This document shows, one piece after another, positions 1 through 49,312 of a stretch of DNA of 49,312 bases (the stretch's first letter is position 1; each line of letters starts with the position of its first letter). The notes below the pieces were generated by a model. That model did no database searches. It had not been told where the DNA came from and saw only the letters and a program-made list of their open reading frames with translations. Position numbers and translations under genes: made by a program. Origin of the DNA: Basidiobolus meristosporus CBS 931.73 (taxonomy: Eukaryota; Fungi; Basidiobolomycota); assembly GCA_002104905.1 (NCBI GenBank), contig MCFE01000656.1, positions 1 through 49,312 on the forward strand. The letters are read 5' to 3'.

Positions 1-734
1 TGATAGATCAGTGGCTCTGCCTCGGTCTCGCATTTGAACACATCCTCGATCAGGATTCTTGGGGTGGACTTGTCATTCCCCGCTCCTGTCACATCTCCAT
101 CGGCGACCACGAACAGCAACTTCGACTCATCATCGTATTCACTCTGGACCACCGAGTTCACGGTCTTCAGGATGACCTCTTTGCTCTCACTGTAGCATGG
201 GATGTGCAAGGCCAGGAGCTTCTTGGACTTATTGCTTGGGTCCGGATCCGGTTTACAGTTCTTCGCCTTACGTTGAACGAATATAGCAGCGATAATGTTG
301 AGAAATGTTACCATCCCGGCACATGCCAAGAAAACTATATACACGATATCCAAAAATATACAGTATGGCAGATTAACTGTCAGTATACCTCTCCCTTCAT
401 TTGCATCGCTACATATTAGCGAAGGCAAAACAAACAAGAGCATGATCATAGATATCACCAGTATTATTATCGCACGAAAATACCGAAACTTTTCCCGCCA
501 GGCTTCTCTCTTTTCTTTGGTATTCAGCCCAAATGGTATTAGCAGGGTCTTGATGAACAAGAAATCGACTACGCTATTGAGACTTATCCAGAGCTTTTGA
601 GCCTCTGGAGATGTGATAGGCTTTTCTGTTGGTGGAAGTTGATACTTTTCGTCCCATTCTACGTAGTCTTCGAAGGAGAACTTGGGTACATCGGAGAAGA
701 TGCGCTTATGTGGCGAGATGTACACTTTGCTCAT
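1..734 (-). CDS. Chitin synthase-like gene, copy 1 (5' part only; runs off the left edge)
   Basis: Open frame from ATG at 734 reads MSKVYISPHKRIFSDVPKFSFEDYVEWDEKYQLPP...KREAWREK...KKLLALHIPCYSESKEVILKTVNSVVQSEY...VADGDVTGAGNDKSTPRIL. It is colinear with copies 2 and 3 and has no intron. Bases 1-226 are identical to 2818-3043. Confidence 0.9.
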   Translation of the reverse strand, partial: MSKVYISPHKRIFSDVPKFSFEDYVEWDEKYQLPPTEKPITSPEAQKLWISLNSVVDFLFIKTLLIPFGLNTKEKREAWREKFRYFRAIIILVISMIMLLFVLPSLICSDANEGRGILTVNLPYCIFLDIVYIVFLACAGMVTFLNIIAAIFVQRKAKNCKPDPDPSNKSKKLLALHIPCYSESKEVILKTVNSVVQSEYDDESKLLFVVADGDVTGAGNDKSTPRILIEDVFKCETEAEPLIY

Positions 735-1275
735 GCTTATGATAGGAGATTTAAGTTTCGGTGAAAGATACACGTTGCTCGAAAATGATTTGCGCGGTTT
801 CTCTTCCGAACTTTCACCGGAACTGCCAACTGTTGAAGAATCCAGCATGGCACCCTAAAGCAAAGGTTTGGGGATGAGTAGAGGACTGGAGCTACAATGC
901 TACTCGCGACATTCATCACGAGAGTAGACAGGTTTTTAAGACGACAGGATCGATTATTCCGGTGGGTTGGTATTGTTGATTACTTGGACATGAAATTAAT
1001 GTACCGCATTGTATTCCTATATGGTTTAGTTATATCGTACATTTGCGATCTAGCACAGGCCAATATTAATGAAATCTCATCACATTTGTGATCCGCTACA
1101 ATCAACCTAGATTGAATTAACCAGTTGGGTTTTATCTTATTTACTGAAGATTGATCGAAAAATTATTTCTGCTTGAATCCGAAATCCTTGACACTGACCA
1201 TTATCCAGGTGGGATATAACAATCCAATATTATGCTCAGAAATTAATAAAATATATTGATTGCACAATATTTACA

Positions 1276-3548
1276 TTATGACACAATAATATGATGTGGG
1301 GTATATGTGGCTGTGCGATCAGCAATACAAACTGGATCTGGAATTTGGATCCTTATTGTGTCCTTCTCTGATGTTAGACGGGTACTGCCCCAACTAAAAT
1401 CATCCATCTTCCATAAGCTGTACAATGGGATCACTACAGCCCACAATGGAAGCCCGAAGATGAACATGAACCACCAGCAGGCTTGCGTCTTCCTTCCGGC
1501 CATCAGTGCAATGAGTCCAGGCAGACAAAACAAGACTATAGGTGAAACCAAGTGATAACCAGGTAAGGTGTGTCCACAGGCCCCAAATCGCTATGCAGCA
1601 TCCGAGTGGCAAGAAGAACGGGATAGCCGATGCCGACCATAGTTCCGACACCATCACCAGCTTCATGCTCCACCTCATCCGCCAGGTTGGAAAGGCCGGT
1701 GGGTTCACAAACAGGTCGAAGTGGTTGTGGATCAGGGAGTTGGTCCACCTTCTGCGCTGGCACAGCAACACGCTCAGCTGATCCGGAACCGTGGTGGTGC
1801 ACACCGCAGATGGGATGTACCGTGTTCTCATGTCTGTCAAATAGCGGATCACCAGGGTGCAAAGATACCGATCCTCTCCGATGGTGAGCAGATTGTGTTC
1901 CCGCATCAGCTTAGGCTCGGCCATGTAGTCTCGCATGATCCGAGGATCCAGCACCGCTGGGCGGACCTCCTTCTTCCCGGTGTCTGGGTTGACACTGTGC
2001 CTCTTGAGTCGATAGATCGTAAAGCATCCCGACAGCACCAGCACATTCGCGTAGAACGACTCGAACGACTTGAGCAGGCAGTGGGTGAGGAAGTACTCAA
2101 ACACTTGGATCATGGTGATGTAGCTCTGCGTCCGATTCTCCACCTTCGTCTCGCCACAAACCCCCGAGAGCTTCGGATCTTTCTCCAGCGCCTGGACCAG
2201 TATATCGAGCCCATCTGGCCGGATGAAAGTGTCTGCATCTGCCACCAGCACATACTCTACGTCCTTCGCATTGCATCCGACTCGCTTGAGTGAGTTGTAC
2301 ATCTCGGCAAACATCGGGCAACTGAATCGAATTTTCCTCCTTCTTAGGTATCCAGAGAGCCGGTTGATGTCCACTGTTGATGCTTTCTAAGGGTGTACTA
2401 GGCATCGAGTCATTTCCGGAGTAGTATGAAGCAACACTGTACCCGTTTCCTGGCCCAGCTCCCCAGAGTGACAACCCTTGGATATGAGCACTTGTCTGCG
2501 CAATCTCAGTGTTGCAACTACTTCCGCTATGGCTGTACTCGAAACTTCCATCTGCAAATGAATCACCATCCTCCATTGCAATCTCCTCAAGCATCTCGTC
2601 CAAGAAGAACCCATTTGCCTCGCGGAAGAAGTTGTACACCACCAACTGCGAGTCTCGCTTGGACCTGTTCCCTGGCTTCGCTGCCTCTCTCTCACTCTCC
2701 AAGCCGACCTTCACCACTAGCAGGTACTTGATCTTGCGGTCTGGCTCACCCTCGGGCGAGTAGTACCCAGTGTACACACAGGCCTTGTTTAGTCTTTGGT
2801 CGCCATGGCCCACTGACTGATAGATCAGTGGCTCTGCCTCGGTCTCGCATTTGAACACATCCTCGATCAGGATTCTTGGGGTGGACTTGTCATTCCCCGC
2901 TCCTGTCACATCTCCATCGGCGACCACGAACAGCAACTTCGACTCATCATCGTATTCACTCTGGACCACCGAGTTCACGGTCTTCAGGATGACCTCTTTG
3001 CTCTCACTGTAGCATGGGATGTGCAAGGCCAGGAGCTTCTTGGGCTTCTCTGCCGGATCCGCTGGTAGCTTATACTTTCCCACCGTTCGCTGGACAACAA
3101 TGGCGGCGATGATGTTCATCAGCATCACCCCGACCGCACAGGCCATAAAGATGATGTACACCACGTCCAAGAACATGCAATATGGCAGCTTCACAGTGAG
3201 GATTCCTGTCGGGGCATCACTTCCGCTACATATAACAAACGGCAAGACAAACAGCAGCACTATCATCACCAGCACCAAAAAGATCATGGCTCGGAAGTAC
3301 CGGATCTTCTCACGCCACGCCTCCCGCTTCTCCTTGGTGTCCAGTCCGAATGGCTTTAGTAGAGACTTGATGAACAAGATGTCAATCACACTGTTGATGG
3401 CGACCCAGACTTTTTGGGCTTTCGGTGAGGTGATCGGCTTGTCAAGTGGTGGAAGCTGATACTTCTCGTCCCATTCTACGTATTCATCAATTTGGCCTTC
3501 GCCCAGTGCATCAGATAATTTCTCGGCAAGACCCTTGGTTGTTGACAT
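1276..3548 (-). pseudogene. Chitin synthase-like gene, copy 2, split by two +1 insertions (pseudogene or sequence error)
   Basis: ORFs 2097-3548, 1400-2374 and 1276-1551 together tile the copy 3 protein. Alignment to copy 3 shows an extra T at 2381 and an extra A at 1540. The GEDRYL and QRRRW motifs are intact. Confidence 0.85.
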
Positions 3549-4171
3549 AGAAATCGCTTGGGATTAGTATAAAGATACCGGCTTCGTGAGCTCCATTTAT
3601 CATTTCTAGCGTTGCGCACTGCACATCAAAATCGAACTCATATGTTGGCCAAGATATGTCTCGGTTGAACCAAGTAAAACCTCAATCTCAAGGTTTTTCC
3701 TGGTCCTTAACTTGACAAAAACTGATTCAGTGAAAAAGCTCTGATCCCTCTTACATAATCATCGATTTTTGGCGCCACTTTTTATGATTGCCCTTATCTT
3801 GTTAACACGGTGACTAGATGGCTCCAAGGCTGAGAGTAATGCAAGTCCCTACTTGCCAATTACGTATTGAATGTCGACTCAGGCACGGTCTGACGAGGCG
3901 GATATTGTGAATGAGACTGTTTCTGAGGCATACGATGTTGGGTATGCGCTAACGCCGCCATTTCAAACAACAGATTGGTGTCAGCTACTCAAAGACAAAC
4001 GGAGTCTGAAGTATTCAGAGTTATGACTATGATTTCTTTATTGAATGCTTGCAATGCGCTATGATAATGACTTACATGAATTTTATGTGGTTGATGGATA
4101 GTTTCATATGAATTGCTTCTCTACCTAGATTAAGGTTAAGGGATGGATGACTTGTCAAGGCGATATGGGGC

Positions 4172-6466
4172 TCATTCTGGAATATTGATGGCTGTGGCTT
4201 GTGGCTCCGAGTGAGGGTCTACTTCCCTAGGCTTTATCTCTTGAACCGATTCCAGAATGGTTTTGGAATAAGTTGGACGGGTACTGCCCCAACTAAAGTC
4301 ATCCATCTTCCATAAGCTGTACAATGGGATCACTACAGCCCACAATGGAAGCCCGAAGATGAACATGAACCACCAGCAGGCTTGCGTTTTCCTTCCGGCC
4401 ATCAGTGCAATGAGTCCAGGCAGACAAAACAAGACTATGGTGAAACCAAGTGATAACCAGGTAAGGTGTGTCCACAGGCCCCAAATCGCTATGCAGCATC
4501 CGAGTGGCAAGAAGAACGGGATAGCTGATGCCGACCATAGTTCCGACACCATCACCAACTTCATGCTCCACCTCATCCGCCAGGTTGGAAAGGCCGGCGG
4601 GTTCACAAACAGGTCGAAGTGGTTGTGGATCAGGGAGTTGGTCCACCTTCTGCGCTGGCACAGCAACACGCTCAGCTGATCCGGAACCGTGGTGGTGCAC
4701 ACCGCGGATGGGATGTACCGTGTTCTCATGTCTGTCAAATAGCGGATCACCAGGGTGCAAAGATACCGATCCTCTCCGATGGTGAGCAGATTGTGTTCCC
4801 GCATCAGCTTAGGCTCGGCCATGTAGTCTCGCATGATCCGAGGATCCAGCACCGCTGGGCGGACCTCCTTCTTCCCGGTGTCTGGGTTGACACTGTGCCT
4901 CTTGAGTCGATAGATCGTAAAGCATCCCGACAGCACCAGCACATTCGCGTAGAACGACTCGAACGACTTGAGCAGGCAGTGGGTGAGGAAGTACTCAAAC
5001 ACTTGGATCATGGTGATGTAGCTCTGCGTCCGATTCTCCACCTTCGTCTCGCCACAAACCCCCGAGAGTTTCGGATCTTTCTCCAGCGCCTGGACCAGTA
5101 TATCGAGCCCATTTGGCCGGATGAAAGTGTCTGCATCTGCTACCAGCACATACTCTACGTCCTTCGCATTGCATCCGACTCGCTTGAGTGAGTTGTACAT
5201 CTCGGCAAACATCGGACAACTGAATCGAATTTTCCTCCTTCTTAGGTATCCAGAGAGCCGGTTGATGTCCACTGTTGAGCTTTCTAAGGGTGTACTAGGC
5301 ATAGAGTCATTTCCGGAGTAGTATGAAGCAACACTGTACCCGTTTCCTGGCCCAGCTCCCCAGAGTGACAACCCTTGGATATGAGCACTTGTCTGCGCAA
5401 TCTCAGTGTTGCAACTACTTCCGCTATGGCTGTACTCGAAACTTCCATCTGCAAATGAATCACCATCCTCCATTGCAATCTCCTCAAGCATCTCGTCCAA
5501 GAAGAACCCATTTGCCTCGCGGAAGAAGTTGTACACCACCAACTGCGAGTCTCGCTTGGACCTGTTCCCTGGCTTCGCTGCCTCTCTCTCACTCTCCAAG
5601 CCGACCTTCACCACTAGCAGGTACTTGATCTTGCGGTCTGGCTCGCCCTCGGGCGAGTAGTACCCGGTGTACACACAGGCCTTGTTTAGTCTTTGGTCGC
5701 CATGGCCCACTGACTGATAGATCAGTGGCTCTGCCTCGGTCTCGCATTTGAACACATCCTCGATCAGGATTCTTGGGGTGGACTTGTCATTCCCCGCTCC
5801 TGTCACATCCCCATCGGCGACCACGAACAGCAACTTCGACTCATCATCGTATTCACTCTGGACCACCGAGTTCACGGTCTTCAGGATGACCTCTTTGCTC
5901 TCACTGTAGCATGGGATGTGCAAGGCCAGGAGCTTCTTGGGCTTCTCTGCCGGATCCGCTGGCAGCTTATACTTTCCCACCGTTCGCTGGACAACAATGG
6001 CGGCGATGATGTTCATCAGCATCACCCCGACCGCACAGGCCATAAAGATGATGTACACCACGTCCAAGAACATGCAATATGGCAGCTTCACAGTGAGGAT
6101 TCCTGTCGGGGCATCACTTCCGCTACATATAACAAACGGCAAGACAAACAGCAGCACTATCATCACCAGCACCAAAAAGATCATGGCTCGGAAGTACCGG
6201 ATCTTCTCACGCCACGCCTCCCGCTTCTCCTTGGTGTCCAGTCCGAATGGCTTTAGTAGAGACTTGATGAACAAGATGTCAATCACACTGTTGATGGCGA
6301 CCCAGACTTTTTGGGCTTTCGGTGAGGTGATCGGCTTGTCAAGTGGTGGAAGCTGATACTTTTCGTCCCACTCCACGTAGTCGTCCTCCCAAATTAGATT
6401 CTCTTGGCTCGGCGACGGGTAGCTATTGTGGGTTAAATAGCTGTCGGAGATATCCATCCCGGTCAT
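4172..6466 (-). CDS. Chitin synthase-like protein, copy 3 (764 aa, intronless, GT2 / Chitin_synth_2 type, division-2-like)
   Basis: Motifs REAWREK, VADGDVTGAGNDKSTP, KPGNRSKRDSQ, ADADT, CGET, IQVFEY, GEDRYL, QRRRW and WKMDDFSWGSTR. Hydrophobic segments lie N- and C-terminal to the catalytic region. Confidence 0.95.
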   Translation of the reverse strand: MTGMDISDSYLTHNSYPSPSQENLIWEDDYVEWDEKYQLPPLDKPITSPKAQKVWVAINSVIDILFIKSLLKPFGLDTKEKREAWREKIRYFRAMIFLVLVMIVLLFVLPFVICSGSDAPTGILTVKLPYCMFLDVVYIIFMACAVGVMLMNIIAAIVVQRTVGKYKLPADPAEKPKKLLALHIPCYSESKEVILKTVNSVVQSEYDDESKLLFVVADGDVTGAGNDKSTPRILIEDVFKCETEAEPLIYQSVGHGDQRLNKACVYTGYYSPEGEPDRKIKYLLVVKVGLESEREAAKPGNRSKRDSQLVVYNFFREANGFFLDEMLEEIAMEDGDSFADGSFEYSHSGSSCNTEIAQTSAHIQGLSLWGAGPGNGYSVASYYSGNDSMPSTPLESSTVDINRLSGYLRRRKIRFSCPMFAEMYNSLKRVGCNAKDVEYVLVADADTFIRPNGLDILVQALEKDPKLSGVCGETKVENRTQSYITMIQVFEYFLTHCLLKSFESFYANVLVLSGCFTIYRLKRHSVNPDTGKKEVRPAVLDPRIMRDYMAEPKLMREHNLLTIGEDRYLCTLVIRYLTDMRTRYIPSAVCTTTVPDQLSVLLCQRRRWTNSLIHNHFDLFVNPPAFPTWRMRWSMKLVMVSELWSASAIPFFLPLGCCIAIWGLWTHLTWLSLGFTIVLFCLPGLIALMAGRKTQACWWFMFIFGLPLWAVVIPLYSLWKMDDFSWGSTRPTYSKTILESVQEIKPREVDPHSEPQATAINIPE

Positions 6467-6578
6467 TATAGAAATGTGAGTTTGCCCGGAAGAAATCGGT
6501 TGCTTGGTAGTAAGCGGCGAAGTATGTTCTGGTTGAAAGAAGACGGCCAGGCTGTCTTTTATATGTTGCTAAGCACTC

Positions 6579-7233
6579 ATGACGAAGATCACCGAGAGGC
6601 TAACGTACTGGGATACCGGTGTTCGTCTCTGTAGATAATTGATTCATTTCACAATAGCGAAACCAGGAGTAGTACTTGACACATCGAAGAACCTATTCAA
6701 TTTCTGGAAGCCATCGTCGATCATCATCACACAATACGAGCTGAGGGTTAGGGTTATCCTGAAATAATCGAGGTCTAGAATCAGATAAAAACGAAATGAT
6801 TATTAATCTATCTTGCAGAAGAATATTTATCCAGGAAAGGGGAGAACTTGGATGGTATATATATATGGTATATAAATACTCGAAGCCTAGCAGTTCAGGG
6901 TCATAAATGATGGAATGCAATCTCTCACAGGACTCACCGCTTCGCGACCCCAAGGTTCGTGAACAACATCAATATAGAAAAAGCCGACTTTCGGAGCAGA
7001 TGCTTCACATGGAATCGGTCGAGGATAACTACGCCACCTCGCTGCAGCGCCTTTCCCAAACCAATATGTCCGAGTCTAAATACCAACCCTCGTTAAAAAC
7101 CTGCCCACTTTCCATCCCTGAGATTAGACAGGAACACACCCGTAGAAAGAGTGAATTGGAGAAACGACGTCTAGCTATGGACGGTATTGAAGCAGCCTAC
7201 GCTGCAATGCTTTCCCACTCTTTCTCGAACTAA
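6579..7233 (+). CDS. Hypothetical ~155 aa protein (proposed exons 6579-6618, 6658-6746, 6819-6854, 6931-7233)
   Basis: Three GT-AG introns (39, 72 and 76 nt) join in phase into one ORF ending in the 6907-7233 frame. No family recognised. Confidence 0.4.
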
Positions 7234-41846: not shown

Positions 41847-43959
41847 CTAGACATCCACTCCGAAATCCCATATCCGGATCTCGTTGTCGTCGCTGCCGGT
41901 GACGATCCGGGTGTCGCTCAGGCCCACGCAACTCACCGGCCCACTGTGCCCGGTCAGCGTGTGCATGCACAGCCCGCTCGACATATCCCACACCTTCACT
42001 GTGCAGTCGTGGGCCCCGCTGACGATGCGCAGCGTGTCGAAGGCTAGACTCCAGACCCCCTCCACGTGGCCAAACATCGTGCGGATGCAGTTTCCGGTGT
42101 TGATCGACCAGGTCCGAATGGTGTTGTCGAGCGCCCCGCTGATCAGGATCGGGCTGTTGTGGGTGTCTTCCGGATGGGTCTGGGACGCAGCGGCCGAGGG
42201 TGCTCCGGTGGGGCGCGCCGGCGATGACGACGAGTTGTCCGAGCTCAGGGAGAAGGCGAAGTTCGCGTGGGAGGCCACCTGGAGACATTGCACCTGCCCG
42301 ATGTGGCCCTTGAAGGTTCGCAGACACGTCTGGGTGGCCAAGTCCCAGTGCTTGATGGTCGTGTCATCCGAGCACGAGAACAGCTGCGTCTTCTGGAAGA
42401 TCGCCACCTTGGTGACCCAGTCGGTGTGGCCGGCCAGCGTCGAGCACTTCCCGGTGCTGAAGTTCCAGATCTTGATGGTGCCGTCGACCGACCCGCTGGC
42501 CAGGGTGGAGCAATCGAAGTGAAGGCACACGATGCCGTTGGTGTGCCCCTCGAGCGTGCGAATGCACTCTCCGGTTCGGTAGTTCCAGATCTTCATCGTG
42601 GCGTCCATCGAGCCGGTGATCAGTTTGCAGGTGTCGAACTGGAGCGCTCGCACGCACCGGCTATGTCCGTCCAACGTTCGGAGCAGCTCTCCGGTCTCGA
42701 TGTCCCAGATCTTGACCGTGTGGTCATACGAGCCGGTGATCAGGTGGGTGTTGTCGAACTGCAGACACATCACCCCGTCCGTGTGGCCCTTCAGGACCTT
42801 GGTGGTGTATATTCCGCGCCGCCAGTTTCTTTCCACTTTGAGTCGCTCGCAGAAGATATCCTTCCAAGGTCGTCGCTGCGGGGGCGGGGGCGGGAGTGGA
42901 GGTCTTGTGGCGCTGCACGGGTCAAGTTTCGAGGGGGGCTCGCCTACGGACTCTGGGCCACTGCCGGGGTCGAACTTATGCTCGCTCTTGACTCGTTCTA
43001 GGAGAAGGTGGGTTATTCGAGATGGTCGAGAGGCGAACAACATGCTGTGGGCAACTTACTTTGGACGATGGGTTCCTCCGACTCCCTCCAACGTTTCTTC
43101 ATGTTCTCCGCCGACTCGGTGATTCGGCTGGGCTCCTTCCATCTCTTTCTGGACTTGCTATCTAACAGCGGGAGTCCCCAGCCGCATTTCCGACATTTCT
43201 TGTCGATGTGCTGAATGCACATGCGGTACCACACGTAGTCATCGTCCGCCAGCTTCTTCCATACCTTCGACACCTGGGCAGCGTGGCATATGGACTTGGC
43301 GTCCAGGAAGGAGAAGATCTTGAGGGAGATCTCCTTGGGTGCCACTGAGATGAAGTCGATTCGGAGGAGCGGGTTGAGGGCAGTCGATAGGTAAGAAAGT
43401 TGTGGGAAGCAGCATTGGGTAAGAAGGCCGCCAAGTATCATTGAGCGGATAGATTGTGGCGCAGAGCCAAAGGTGGACCACACCTGGCTCACTATGGTTT
43501 GCAACTCTTTCGGGAGTTGGTCGAGTTGCTAGATGGGACCAGGTTTAGTGGAGTCCTCGGGAACAAAAGACATACAAGGACGGTTACCATTTGCAAAGCA
43601 TTTAGGGAAGGGCCATCAACTGCCCGCCGTAGATCCGGACGATGCCGATAGCAAGTGTAGGATTCCTTTTCCCGGTGAGGATTCAAGGGGTGTGCGGGAT
43701 GCTGTTTGTGAAAAGCGGTCATGGCCAGTTCTTCGGAGTCCAGGGGCGTTTCCGTCTCATCGAAATTGAAAGGCTTCTGCTTCCCTGGGTGCTCGTCCAA
43801 CTCTTTCGACATGGTCTGACGGGTTTGGGAGAGAAAATAGGTAGATACGAAGGGGTTTGGCTCAGCAAGAATTCTGGCCATGAAGGTAACTTGATCATGG
43901 TATACTCTGCTCATTGGATGGACAGCGAATCCATCCTCGTGTGACAAGAATAGGGACAA
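41847..43959 (-). CDS. MET30: F-box/WD40 sulfur controller (Met30/SconB/Scon-2); start codon uncertain
   Basis: CYRHRPDL, LTQCCFPQLSYL, F-box IDFISVAPKEISLKIFSFLD, MCIQHIDKKCRKCGWGLPLL, RPWKDIFCERLKVERNWRRG, then WD40 repeats. Confidence 0.92.
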
Positions 43960-44974
43960 ATCACGCCATTCATCAACCTAATTCTTGAATTCCCGGCCAT
44001 TTTTGGTAGATTTACGGATTATGGAAGCCGAGAAATTAACGAGCCACCCTCCACATTTTCCCGCCAAAGCCTCTCTTTGCTGTTTGTATCACCACTGGGT
44101 GCTGAATACTGGGTGTTGGCAGATGCTCCCATAGCCCGCATGCTGTGTCAACCAAGATTCCATCTTGATTGTTGCTAAATTTTCTGCTCTTCATATAGCA
44201 CGATTCCCTTTCAATCTATTAGTTTAATATTTGATACTCTTGAAAGATCGCGATGCTGCTCTTAGGCCATCAACTGCAGCTGCGGGTGAAGCAAATTTGA
44301 TTAAGCCCACAATTTTAGTTCCAAATGGTGGTGTGAATATTGGGTTGAGTGAGAGCATTGCCAATGACTTGTATATGATTCTGTACTCGCTTCAACCCCG
44401 TAAATCCCAGCCAAATAGCCAATTTCAAGATCGTCCTATTCACCCAAAAGCTCTTGGCTGCTTATCTGCCTAACCTCGGGACTTTTCGGGGTGGCTAGCT
44501 CTCAAGCACGGGAAGGCGTCTCAAGTTAAATGGGTGATTGCAAGGCTTAGGAAATCTGGCCTCACAATTGATCATGTAAGGTTATGGAAATAGGTGTGCC
44601 AAGTTAGGACCTAAGTAATGCTCCATATTCTTTGCGCAAAATCTTAAGCCATTAGGTGCTACACAATGCTTCTACCATTCTGACAATTAGTCAATGCATC
44701 TAATCCTCAACTATTTCAAGTCTCTTGCTGAGTTCTTTGGTGAAATGAACTTATGATAGTGGTGATTTATGTTAAATGTATCTGAATGAAGAGAACCCAC
44801 TCTTAGCCTTAAACTTCTCTGCTATATTTCTGCTCAATGTTGATAGGCATATACTGCACTAAGATACATGGCTGAGTAATATCACCTTCAGCTGAGATAT
44901 ACCAAGATGAATGAGTGGTATCTTGTTAAATGCAAAATGCAGACTGGTGATCTTGCTCAGGGTTAGGGCTGCCT

Positions 44975-45085
44975 TGTTGGAAAACTTGTAATTACTCCTA
45001 AATATTCACCTAGCTTAGTCATTTAGATCATAACCTACAAATCTAAGATAGTACTGACTAAATTTCTTGTTGGGTTTTACTTAAT
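44975..45085 (+). repeat. 5' fragment of a copia-family LTR
   Basis: TGTTGGAAAACTTGTAATT...AAATATTCACCTAGCTTAGTCATTTAGATCA matches the start of the LTR at 46142. Confidence 0.75.
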
Positions 45086-45119
45086 CACTTCAGCACTACT
45101 AGGTGGGAGGTCCAAGCAG

Positions 45120-45300
45120 ATTATAAATAGCCCCAATTACTATATCATTGAGGGTACAAACTTGGACTATGCCTATTCAGTCCTTATTGATGATCCTCAG
45201 ATTGTAAATAAGACTGTAAATAGCCCTAAGACAGAGCTTTGGAGATCTGCAATGACCAAGGAGTATTGGGCACTGATGAAAAATCAAACTTGGGACTTGG
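45120..45300 (+). mobile_element. Degenerate internal fragment of the same copia family (region just upstream of RT)
   Basis: Similar to the reverse complement of about 48600-48780 (ATAGCCC..AATTACTATATC...TGGAGATCTGCAA...AAAATCAAACTTGGGACTT). Confidence 0.8.
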
Positions 45301-45318
45301 GCCACTTAACAATCAGCC

Positions 45319-45881
45319 TGTTGTAAGAGTCTGGGAGATATTGGAAGTGATTTGGAGTACAAGTAGATTATGTGGTTTCCACTTAATGATTTATTGATAG
45401 TATATACAAGCATAAAGAGTAGGTCTAGAAAGGTCTCAAGAGCATGTATGCAAAGTTTGGGGCTGTTTGGACAGCGTATTGAACTTTCATGTTCTGGGTA
45501 CCCATTGTTTTGATGAGAATATTCTAAGTAAATCCCAACAAGGAACTTGGTCAGCTATTTTCTAAGATTTGTAGGTAAAGATCCAAGTGCCTAAGTTGGG
45601 TGAATATTTAGGTAGAATTACAAACTTTTACAGCAATCCCACTCAACTTAATGTTCATACTGACTAGTCCAAATTTTGACCTAAAATACTCACATTTGTC
45701 TTCAGCTAATGGTTTGGTAAATATGTTTGCAATCATTTCATCTGTAGAGCACTTAACTAAGTCAACCAAGTTATTCCCTATAGCTTCACATATGAAATGA
45801 GGTCTAATATCTATGTGCTTAGTTCTAGTATGAGAAGTTGGATTTATACATAAATGTAGACATCCTTGATTATCTTGAAAT
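45319..45881 (-). mobile_element. Truncated copia 3' end: RNase H remnant, PPT and 3' LTR (45319-45635)
   Basis: Colinear, diverged copy of about 46775-47370, with PPT GAGTGGGAT abutting the LTR. Confidence 0.85.
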
Positions 45882-46141
45882 TAACACCAAGAAAAATAAT
45901 TTGGCCCTGCAGGTGGAGCCAATCTAGATCAGCCATCAGGATCTCATCAGGAGACTGTTGTTATACCAGCAGCTTGGAATTAATGACCCTTTGCACAATC
46001 TTATGATGGGATCACAATGGCATTTGGGTAATTTTACCACCAGATGGAGTTAAAAATATTGGGGTGTTTGGATGGTGTTTTGCCAAGGGTGGCATGCCAT
46101 TGTTGCAGCCTTTGTGTGCTCTACAACTATTTGGGTGGATC

Positions 46142-46499
46142 TCTTGTAAAATTTGAATTTCCACCTAAATATTCACCTAGCTTAGTCACTTAGATCAATA
46201 CCTTCAAGTCCTAGAGAATACTGACCAAATTCCTTGTCGGGATTTACTTAGAATATTTTCACCAATATACCAGGTATCCAGAACATGGAAATTCTCAAAG
46301 TTGTCCAAGCAGCCCCAAACTTTACACACATGTTCTTGGGACCTTCCTTAACCTATTCCACATGTTTGCTATGCCAAGACCATGTAAAAGTATGCATACT
46401 ACTTACATTCAATAAATCATTAAGTGAAAACCACATATTCTACTTGTTCTCCCAATCACTTCCAATATCTCCAAAACTCTTACAACAGGTTATGAGCCC
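46142..46499 (+). mobile_element. Copia 5' LTR (46142-46487) with primer-binding site GGTTATGAGCCC (46488-46499)
   Basis: A 346-bp LTR ending TTACAACA, highly similar to the reverse complement of 46775-47123. The PBS follows immediately. Confidence 0.88.
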
Positions 46500-46575
46500 C
46501 AAGCTGTCACTCTCTGCAATGTCTACTACTGCTATTACTGGAATTTTTCCCTCTGCTGAAAAGTTGGATGGATCT

Positions 46576-46774
46576 TGTTGTAATTATTAGGTTGTCACCA
46601 AAATATTCATGCTAATTTAGTCACATAGACCTTACTCTTTGATTAGCATTTTGTCCAGATCAAACTTCTTGTTGGGATTTACTTAGAAAATTTTCACCAA
46701 ATTATCAGGTACCCAGATTATGATCTTTCTCAAAGTTATCCAAAAGCCCCCAAACTTTGCACACATGTTCTTGG
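46576..46774 (+). repeat. 5' portion of a more divergent related LTR, interrupted by the minus-strand element
   Basis: Starts TGTTGTAA and shares CTTGTTGGGATTTACTTAGAA and CCCCAAACTTTGCACACATGTTCTTGG with the other LTRs. Confidence 0.75.
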
Positions 46775-49312
46775 TGCTGTAAGAGTCTTGGAGATATTTG
46801 AAGTAATTGGGAGAACAAGTAGATTATGTGGTTTTCACTTAATGATTTGTTGAATGTAAAAGTAGTATTCATACTTTTACATGATCTTAGCATGACAAAC
46901 ATGTAGAATAGGTTAAGGAAGATCCCAAAAGCATGCATGCAAAGTTTGGGGCTGTTTGGACAACTTTGAGAATTTTCATGTTCTGGGTACCTGGTATTTT
47001 AATGAAAATATTCTAAGTAAATCCCAACAAGGAATTTGGTCAGTATTCTCTAGGACTTGAAGGTGATGATCTAAGTGACTAAGTTAGGTGAATATTTAGG
47101 TGGAATTACAAATTTTTACAACACTCCCACTCAGCTAAATGTTCATTCTGACTAGTCCTAATTTTGACCTAAGATATTCAAACTTGTCTCTAGCTAATGG
47201 TTTGGTAAATATGTCTGCAATCATTTCATCTGTAGGACAGTAAACTAAGCTAACTAAGTTATTCTCTATAGCTTCACGTACAAAATGATGTCTAATATCT
47301 ATGTGCTGGGTTCTAGCATGAAAAGTTGGATTTCTACCTAATTGTATACATCCTTGATTATCTTGAAATAAAGTAATAGGAGTTTTTTGACATAGGCCTA
47401 AATCTGTAAAAAGTTTTCTTAACCACATTGCTTCTTTTGTAGCTTCACAGGCTGCCATATACTCTGCCTCTGTGGTGGAAAGTGTTACAGTTGGTTGCCT
47501 TCTTGAATTCCATGAAATTGCTCCTTTACAGTAAAGAAAGGTGTATCCTGTTGTGGATCTTCTGTCTTCTGAATTTTGTCTCCAATCAGCATCAGAGTAT
47601 CCCATAAGATCCTGTTCTGAATCCTTATAAGTGTATCTTGAGCAGATATCAGCAGTTCCTTTTAGGTATCTAAAATTCTGCTCAACTGCTGCAATATGAT
47701 CAGATCCATAGTTCTGATTATGTTGGCTGACAACTCCCACTGAATATGAGATATCTGGACATGTTCTAAGCATGATATACATCAGACTGCCAACCATAGA
47801 TTGATAAGGAAAATCAGGGCTTTCAGATGGCACCAAGCTCTCATGATTTGGTTGAGTTTGGACCAAGTTAAGGTTTGTCTCCATTGGGGTAGCTGCCGGT
47901 TTACAGTCTTCCATTTGATACTTCTTTAGTATATCTTGAATATACTAGGATTGGCTTAGGGTGATAGTCTGGGTACTTCTGTCTATGGAGAACTTAATCC
48001 CCAAGTAGTAACTGAGTTCTCCTAGATCAGACATCTTGTACTCTTTAGATAGGCTGCACTTAGTCTCTTCCAATGTTGCTAGGTTATTGGTGGCTATAAT
48101 AAGATCATCCACATATAGAGCTAATAGAACTGGATTTGCTCTATCTGGCTTGTAGTATATACTATAGTCAGCATTACTCCTTTTGAAACTCAAGGATTCC
48201 AAATATGATTATTTTTTGCAATTCCAGGCTCTTGATGATTGTTTGAGACCATAAAGTGACTTTTTAAGCTTGCAGACCAAATGGGGGTTATCTTGGTCAA
48301 CAAACCCATCAGGCTGGTCCATATACATGTCCTCATCAAGTTCTCCATTCAAAAATGCGGTTTTTACATCCATTTGATGAATACAAAACTTATATTTTGC
48401 TGCAATAGCCAATATTAATCTGATGGAATTAAACTTGGCCACCGGTGCAAAGGTCTCAGTATAGTCAAGTCCTTTTGTTTGAGAGTATCCTTTGGCTACA
48501 AGTCTTGCTTTGTATCTTTCAATTGTACCATCAGCCTTGTATTTTGTCTTGAAGACCCATCTGCATCCAATTGATTTTTGGTTGATTGGTAATTTGACTA
48601 AGTCCCAAGTTTGATTTTCCATCAGGGCCTGATATTCCTCAGTCCTTGCAGATCTCCAAAACTTTGTCTGAGGGCTATTTAGGGCCTCTTTTACAGTCTG
48701 GGGTTCATCAATATGGACTGAATAGGTATAGGCTAAGTTTGTATCCTCATTGATATAGTAATTTGGGCTATTTCTTGTCTGATTGGATCTCTGGGCATTT
48801 GATACTGGAATGATCACTTCTGGGATATTCCTGGGCACTGTTTCTGGCTGAACCATGGTTGTAGAGTCCTCTGGAGTGAAAAAATCTTCATTGTTTTGCT
48901 CTGATTCAATCCTGACCATTGGTGGACTTGAGATCAAATTTTTGTCATCATCTGATGTCATTATTTGTGAAAATTTTGAATTTTCATCAAACAACACATC
49001 CCTGGACTTGATAAGCTTCTTTGCTTTAGTATTGTAGAGTCTGTATGCCTTACTCTCATTGCAGTAGCCCAAAAATATGCATTTTACACTTTTTGGCTCA
49101 AATTTTGACTGATTTCCAGCCAGTTTTTTGGCATATGCTGTACACCCAAATATTCTTAGATGTTCTGCACTTGGTCTGTATCCATACCATGCTTCAAATG
49201 GAGTAGAATCACAAAGCATTCTGTTATAACTCCTATTTTTAAGGTATACAGCAGTGGCAACTGATTCCACCCAAAAATCATAGGATAATTTTGATCATGG
49301 ATCATAGATGTT
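46775..49312 (-). mobile_element. Ty1/copia LTR retrotransposon, decayed (3' LTR 46775-47123, PPT 47124-47132, pol: integrase-RT-RNase H; continues past the window)
   Basis: INT-RT-RH order with FEAWYG, CIFLGY, YKARLVAKGYSQ, HQMDVKTAFLNG, LYVDD, GYSDADW, STTEAEYMA and HIDIRHHF. In-frame stops at 48209-48211 and 47945-47947, and a frameshift near 49295. Confidence 0.96.

Follow-up and report, generated by a model that had tools for sequence, protein, structure and literature searches.

Interlocus gene conversion, or the concerted evolution of tandem duplicates, has been described for globin genes, histone genes, ribosomal DNA and many fungal and animal gene families. In such systems old paralogues carry sharply bounded, near-identical tracts, keep their own flanks on both sides of these tracts, give conflicting trees for adjacent segments, and have tracts that end where identity runs out. 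These properties are shared by a locus of the fungus Basidiobolus meristosporus CBS 931.73, at the left end of contig MCFE01000656.1 (assembly GCA_002104905.1), where three division-2 chitin synthase genes are arranged head-to-tail on the minus strand; the retention of both flanks is seen in the second and third of these genes. The window analysed here is this complete contig, with a length of 49,312 bp. We consider it highly probable that the three genes are old paralogues, parts of which have been homogenised by ectopic gene conversion. The same proposal had been made in a preliminary description of this DNA, together with the retention of each gene’s own ends, and it is borne out by steps in synonymous divergence, conflicting trees, a clustering of substitutions at tract edges, the age of the tail of the second gene, and the presence of the junctions in short-read contigs. 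The locus does not differ in kind from the known system: the process is ordinary and reveals no new mechanism, and its novelty is confined to the gene family, chitin synthase, and to the host, Basidiobolus. We found no paper in the literature on gene conversion among Basidiobolus chitin synthases.

Judged by their translations, the genes of the array are division-2 chitin synthases, with the class IV / Chs3-like enzymes as their nearest counterparts. A profile search with copy 3, the only intact member, returned a match to Chitin_synth_2 (PF03142, GT2) of 401.8 bits against a cutoff of 27, and the fragment of copy 1 matched the same family with 57.3 bits. DADT, GEDRYL, QRRRW and QxFEY-type motifs are found in the copy 3 translation, and the first three of these are kept in all of the paralogues that we aligned. 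The match to Chitin_synth_2 and the QRRRW, EDR and QxFEY-type motifs are common to the fungal division-2 enzymes of the class IV / Chs3-like type. The Basidiobolus enzyme differs from these, however, in being short (764 residues), in having no cytochrome b5, myosin, ankyrin or PF22997 domain, and in having a catalytic domain that is split by a linker of ~90 residues.

We number the genes from the left end of the window, and their coordinates are collected in Table 1. Because the contig begins at position 1, copy 1 is truncated by the assembly and not by biology, a circumstance that the preliminary description had missed along with two frameshifts in copy 2. The offsets between the repeated copies are 2817 and 2897–2899 bp (BLASTN).

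Copies 2 and 3 are near-identical from the YVEWD codons to the WGSTR codons, as was noticed at the outset. The BLASTN alignment of the two tracts (1373–3482 and 4272–6379) has 99.005% identity over 2110 columns, with 19 mismatches and two one-base gaps. The tract accounts for ~92% of the protein and is internal in both genes, each of its flanks being private to the copy that carries it. When the two genes were aligned globally together with their flanks, identity dropped to ~50%, the level of random sequence, within ~20 bp on either side. Alignments of the regions between and beside the tracts (672–1372, 3489–4271 and 6392–7200) scored no higher than those of shuffled sequence. Within the tract, Nei-Gojobori estimates for three segments gave 0.02–0.04 synonymous substitutions per site (dS) and ~0.001 nonsynonymous substitutions per site (dN); in these codon alignments the register was held by passing over both extra bases of copy 2.

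The few differences between the two copies are themselves informative. Seventeen of the 19 substitutions are synonymous, a proportion with a probability of ~1e-6 against neutral transitions, which indicates that the differences arose in sequences under purifying selection. They are spread evenly over the tract except for clusters at its edges, with three in the last 18 bp (P = 6e-4) and two in the first 27 bp (P = 0.025); such clustering is the expectation if the edges of the tract are older than its interior. All but one of the 19 substitutions are transitions, partly because of the constraint to synonymous sites, and they fall in CpT (7), CpG (5), CpA (4) and CpC (2) contexts. Repeat-induced point mutation leaves C-to-T transitions with a strong dinucleotide preference, which is CpA in Neurospora, and damages both copies of a repeat. 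We rejected this process as the source of the substitutions, given the mixed dinucleotide contexts with no preference of the CpA type and the predominance of synonymous changes.

Outside the shared tract, the N-termini that precede YVEWD show no similarity between the copies, and nothing matches the 23-residue N-terminus of copy 1 or the 22-residue one of copy 2. Over residues 3–764, copy 3 is 82.9% identical to the gene at locus L003 of the sister species Basidiobolus ranarum, and both its N-terminus and its tail are similar to those of the L003 gene (p = 0.001). Copy 3 therefore carries the ancestral ends. The 33-residue tail of copy 2 is dissimilar to that of copy 3 and resembles the tails of L006, P0001 and P0002 (p = 0.001–0.03), the likeness running through a diverged IxIP[DE]P motif that is common to the family. 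On this resemblance, the tail of copy 2 is an old homologous tail and not random flanking DNA. The ends and spacers had initially been described as unrelated throughout. This is correct for the spacers, which align at the level of shuffled sequence, and for the dissimilar N-termini, but not for the tail of copy 2 with its diverged family motif. The homology of copies 1 and 2 to the L003 gene ends at the same places as the 99% tract, and the limits of the tract are thus the limits of alignable sequence.

A second boundary, of a different kind, lies within copy 1. From the contig end to the KKLLALHIP codons, copy 1 is identical to copy 2, including position 96, which is T in copies 1 and 2 and C in copy 3; beyond this point the two genes diverge sharply. 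This switch had also been recognised in the preliminary description, and an ungapped alignment of 665 bp confirms it, since all 145 differences are located at 227–665 (hypergeometric P = 1e-30). No difference was found by the Nei-Gojobori method in the 74 codons from KKLLALHIP, as compared to proportions of 0.81 at synonymous (pS) and 0.19 at nonsynonymous sites (pN) in the preceding 147 codons. The interspecies orthologues P0001 and P0002 have saturated pS values of 0.74–0.79 per segment, and the unconverted part of copy 1 is therefore as saturated as a comparison between species. Synonymous divergence steps up sharply at the tract limits: dS is 0–0.04 inside the tracts, with saturation in the adjoining sequence. 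In maximum-likelihood trees, the membrane segment of copy 1 branches outside copies 2 and 3, and its branch is long; in the adjacent segment, copy 1 is identical to copy 2.

The junctions were compared with Logan contigs of public sequencing runs, in which bubbles had been popped. Runs X1 and X2 are from the same (source) sample, and X3 is from a different library of the same study. The contigs of X1 and X2 agree with the window to 99% or better. One X1 contig (201–1411) crosses the junction at 1373 and starts 26 nt to the left of the copy 1 switch; a contig from a k = 31 graph would begin in this way at a repeat branch. The junction at 3482 is spanned by contigs of X1 (3444–3786) and X2 (3018–3793), and that at 4272 by a contig covering 3821–4328. 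A loose end at 3482 corresponds to 6380–6409, the 5′ flank of copy 3, with one mismatch. The switch at 226/227 is crossed by an X3 contig (104–499) with 123 and 273 matching bases and no differences. A chimeric assembly is made unlikely by these bridging contigs. A stretch of ~30 bp in spacer 2 (3787–3820) has no X1 or X2 contig coverage, though it is not of low complexity.

The highly probable reading can be laid out as a series of steps. At least three old paralogues of an intronless, Basidiobolus-specific division-2 chitin synthase would have been present in a tandem array. The duplications would be old, since the spacers, the N-termini and copy 1’s membrane region are saturated with changes, to the extent seen between species. 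Later, non-reciprocal recombination between misaligned neighbours would have overwritten parts of the genes, most simply while a break was being repaired from the adjacent copy. One of the resulting tracts would be the entire alignable block of copies 2 and 3 (2.1 kb, dS ~0.04), and another would begin with the glycosyltransferase domain, at KKLLALHIP, and would have made copy 1 the same as copy 2 downstream of that point. As the endpoints of these tracts differ, at least two events would be required. The tracts would end where pre-existing identity runs out, which would leave the ends of the genes private. The likely direction is from the copy 3 lineage into copies 2 and 1, because the shared sequence groups with the B. 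ranarum genes on a short branch, and because copy 3 has the ancestral ends.

Several observations nevertheless weigh against this reading. A one-to-one orthologue in a sister species was found for neither copy 1 nor copy 2, and the age of the array is therefore judged from saturation inside this genome. The uniform dS within the tract of copies 2 and 3, taken alone, would also fit a young duplication. The contig starts inside copy 1, where the identical tract can be followed only to position 1 and the 3′ flank lies outside the contig; copy 1 may accordingly be a crossover hybrid. Contigs with popped bubbles cannot assign substitutions to individual copies, nor can they confirm the two insertions in copy 2. 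Finally, X2 joins a C at 3066 to the own flank of copy 2, at a position where the assembly has T, and some of the substitutions may thus be assigned to the wrong copy.

The reading could be extended by assuming that selection maintains distinct N-terminal membrane and terminal modules on a catalytic body that is repeatedly homogenised, yielding differently placed or regulated enzymes, and that the array is one case of pervasive conversion in a duplicate-rich genome. The modules would be the membrane region of copy 1, which is fast-evolving but open, and the three different N-termini. We regard this extension as unlikely. The related suggestion, made at first, of a single enzyme core with interchangeable targeting or regulatory ends found no support: the homogenised tract covers nearly the whole protein, the private ends of copies 1 and 2 amount to 22–33 residues, their N-termini having no detectable relatives, and copy 2 is frameshifted in the assembly. 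Moreover, tract limits that coincide with the limits of alignable homology are what the mechanics of conversion alone would give.

Unequal crossing-over, in which reciprocal exchange between misaligned members would produce hybrid genes and change the copy number, is favoured by the same-strand tandem arrangement and by the single switch point of copy 1 before the contig end. The short reads, with a core variant that is shorter by 226 bp and an additional 3′ flank not present in the window, also allow for an array that varies in structure. However, copies 2 and 3 have different sequence to either side of their shared tract, which calls for a non-crossover or a double exchange, and the identical segment of copy 1 would likewise be internal if the additional 3′ flank belongs to copy 1. 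We consider this explanation of the array quite unlikely.

We judge it very unlikely that copy 2 (or copy 3) arose recently by duplication of the YVEWD-to-WGSTR segment alone, beside its source, and that its “private” ends are flanking DNA read through as far as the next ATG and stop. Such a young partial duplication would agree with a dS of ~0.04 along the 2.1-kb tract that shows no internal mosaic, with the lack of relatives of the copy 2 N-terminus, and with the frameshifted state of copy 2. A tandem duplication would, however, have carried a spacer along, and the spacers are unrelated; the tail of copy 2 retains the family motif in diverged form, and substitutions cluster at both edges of the tract. 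In addition, copy 1 has the same 5′ homology limit and a comparable spacing (2817 versus 2899 bp), yet its membrane region is saturated, which shows that the array already held diverged members.

Least probable of all is a collapsed or chimeric assembly, or the polishing of one copy with the reads of another: the CBS 931.73 genome was sequenced with PacBio technology (PMC7466969), the contig starts inside the repeat and has its other end in a copia-type element, and the short reads contain combinations absent from the assembly (those at 2406 and 3066 and the 226-bp skip), but contigs of the source sample bridge 1373, 3482 and 4272, the 5′ flank of copy 3 is present as a loose end, and a contig from a different library crosses 226/227 without a mismatch.

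Copy 2 differs from copy 3 by a single extra base at 1540 and another at 2381, neither of them in a homopolymer, and its frame is broken into three pieces as a result. The short-read contigs contain the insertion-free form alone at 1540 and 2382, a form that could derive from copy 3 or copy 1. Given that the differences between copies 2 and 3 were shaped by purifying selection, the frameshifts are either very young or errors of the assembly (consensus). If both insertions are real, copy 2 was probably disabled as a gene only very recently. The public gene models for the two copies look wrong. Model P0005 (copy 2, 1276–3548) places introns across both frameshifts and ends in out-of-frame sequence, and model P0004 (copy 3, 4172–6466) takes an internal Met as its start, so that 91 in-frame residues with conservation across all paralogues are missing from it.

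The short reads also point to sequence beyond the assembled array. In contigs of X1 and X2 the core continues, at ~1382, into a 3′ flank that neither the window nor any of the fetched loci contains. On this evidence, the genome has at least one further core copy or haplotype, with a tail of its own. Other contigs of both runs join position 2340 to 2567 or 5464 and thereby skip 226 bp (2341–2566; equivalent to 5239–5463). In the register of copy 3, the skip amounts to 225 bp or 75 codons, and it is located in the variable linker. We rejected an intron as its explanation: read on the gene strand, the skipped piece has GT..AA termini, fixed without slack, and so does not qualify as a canonical intron. 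More probably, another copy or allele carries a deletion here. The insertion-free form also occurs in the reads combined with a C at 2406, a combination absent from the contig. This combination, the skip and the additional flank probably come from the unassembled remainder of copy 1, a further copy or a second haplotype. X1 and X2 have different letters at the unique sites 606, 1145, 3619, 4270 and 6392, each at full contig depth, which suggests two alleles, as in a non-haploid or mixed-nuclei culture, one of them being lost by bubble popping. The depth of the core contigs is 1.3–1.9 times that of the unique parts, which is nearer to two copies than to three, with a large scatter that makes depth a poor gauge of copy number.

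A protein search returned close relatives of these enzymes in Basidiobolus only. P0001, which is 77% identical, is encoded on a different contig of the same B. meristosporus genome, and P0002, P0003, P0006 and P0121 are from B. ranarum. The best matches outside the genus are class IV-like chitin synthases with 35–40% identity, over the catalytic half only. A word search of this genome with the C-terminal 347 residues returned no further near-identical protein. The loci of the single-copy relatives P0001 and P0002 were considered as the orthologous locus of the array. They are flanked by a kexin-like peptidase gene and by sulfate transporter genes, none of which occurs in the window; we rejected them for this reason, and they represent a different, older paralogue. 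The B. ranarum contig L004 (JASJQH010010742.1) has a length of 2045 bp and contains residues 41–721 only, almost exactly the limits of the homogenised block. It has the look of a repeat that a short-read assembly collapsed, a hint that B. ranarum, too, may have several near-identical cores whose ends differ, and that the same process may act there.

Table 1. Coordinates of the chitin synthase copies, their tracts and the spacers in the window
Feature	Coordinates	Strand	Description
Copy 1, 5′ part only	1..734	-	244 codons from the ATG at 732–734; open frame, cut at the contig end; Chitin_synth_2 match
Copy 1, putative converted tract	1..226	-	Base-for-base identical to copy 2 (2818–3043); contig end to KKLLALHIP codons
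Copy 1, putative unconverted old part (N-terminal membrane region)	227..665	-	67% identity to copies 2 and 3
Spacer 1	735..1275	.	Start of copy 1 to stop of copy 2; unrelated to other spacers
Copy 2	1276..3548	-	Full length, in three frames; own 22-residue N-terminus; 33-residue tail with diverged IxIP[DE]P motif
Copy 2, putative homogenised tract	1373..3482	-	YVEWD to WGSTR; 99.0% identical to copy 3
Spacer 2	3549..4171	.	Start of copy 2 to stop of copy 3; unrelated to other spacers
Copy 3	4172..6466	-	Intact intronless open reading frame of 764 residues; N-terminus and tail orthologous to B. ranarum locus L003
Copy 3, putative homogenised tract	4272..6379	-	Counterpart of the copy 2 tract

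Both ends of the contig fall within repeats. At the right end, a fragment of a copia-type reverse transcriptase (RVT_2, SH3_retrovirus) on the minus strand (48209–49270) reaches the contig end and lies in an AT-rich block (44000–49312, ~37% G+C). To the left of this block, an open reading frame of 398 residues on the minus strand (41847–43043) encodes a WD40 β-propeller, and its G+C content of 62% explains the peak in base composition. An Rfam search of the window returned zero matches.

The array has consequences for how this enzyme lineage is studied. Trees of these chitin synthases mislead unless the converted tracts are masked, and counts of the copies of this lineage in Basidiobolus are probably too low, since the repeat interrupts assemblies. 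As conversion among old paralogues is the reading that we hold highly probable, the locus would show concerted evolution at work in an early-diverging fungus, in a clean form that can be dated.

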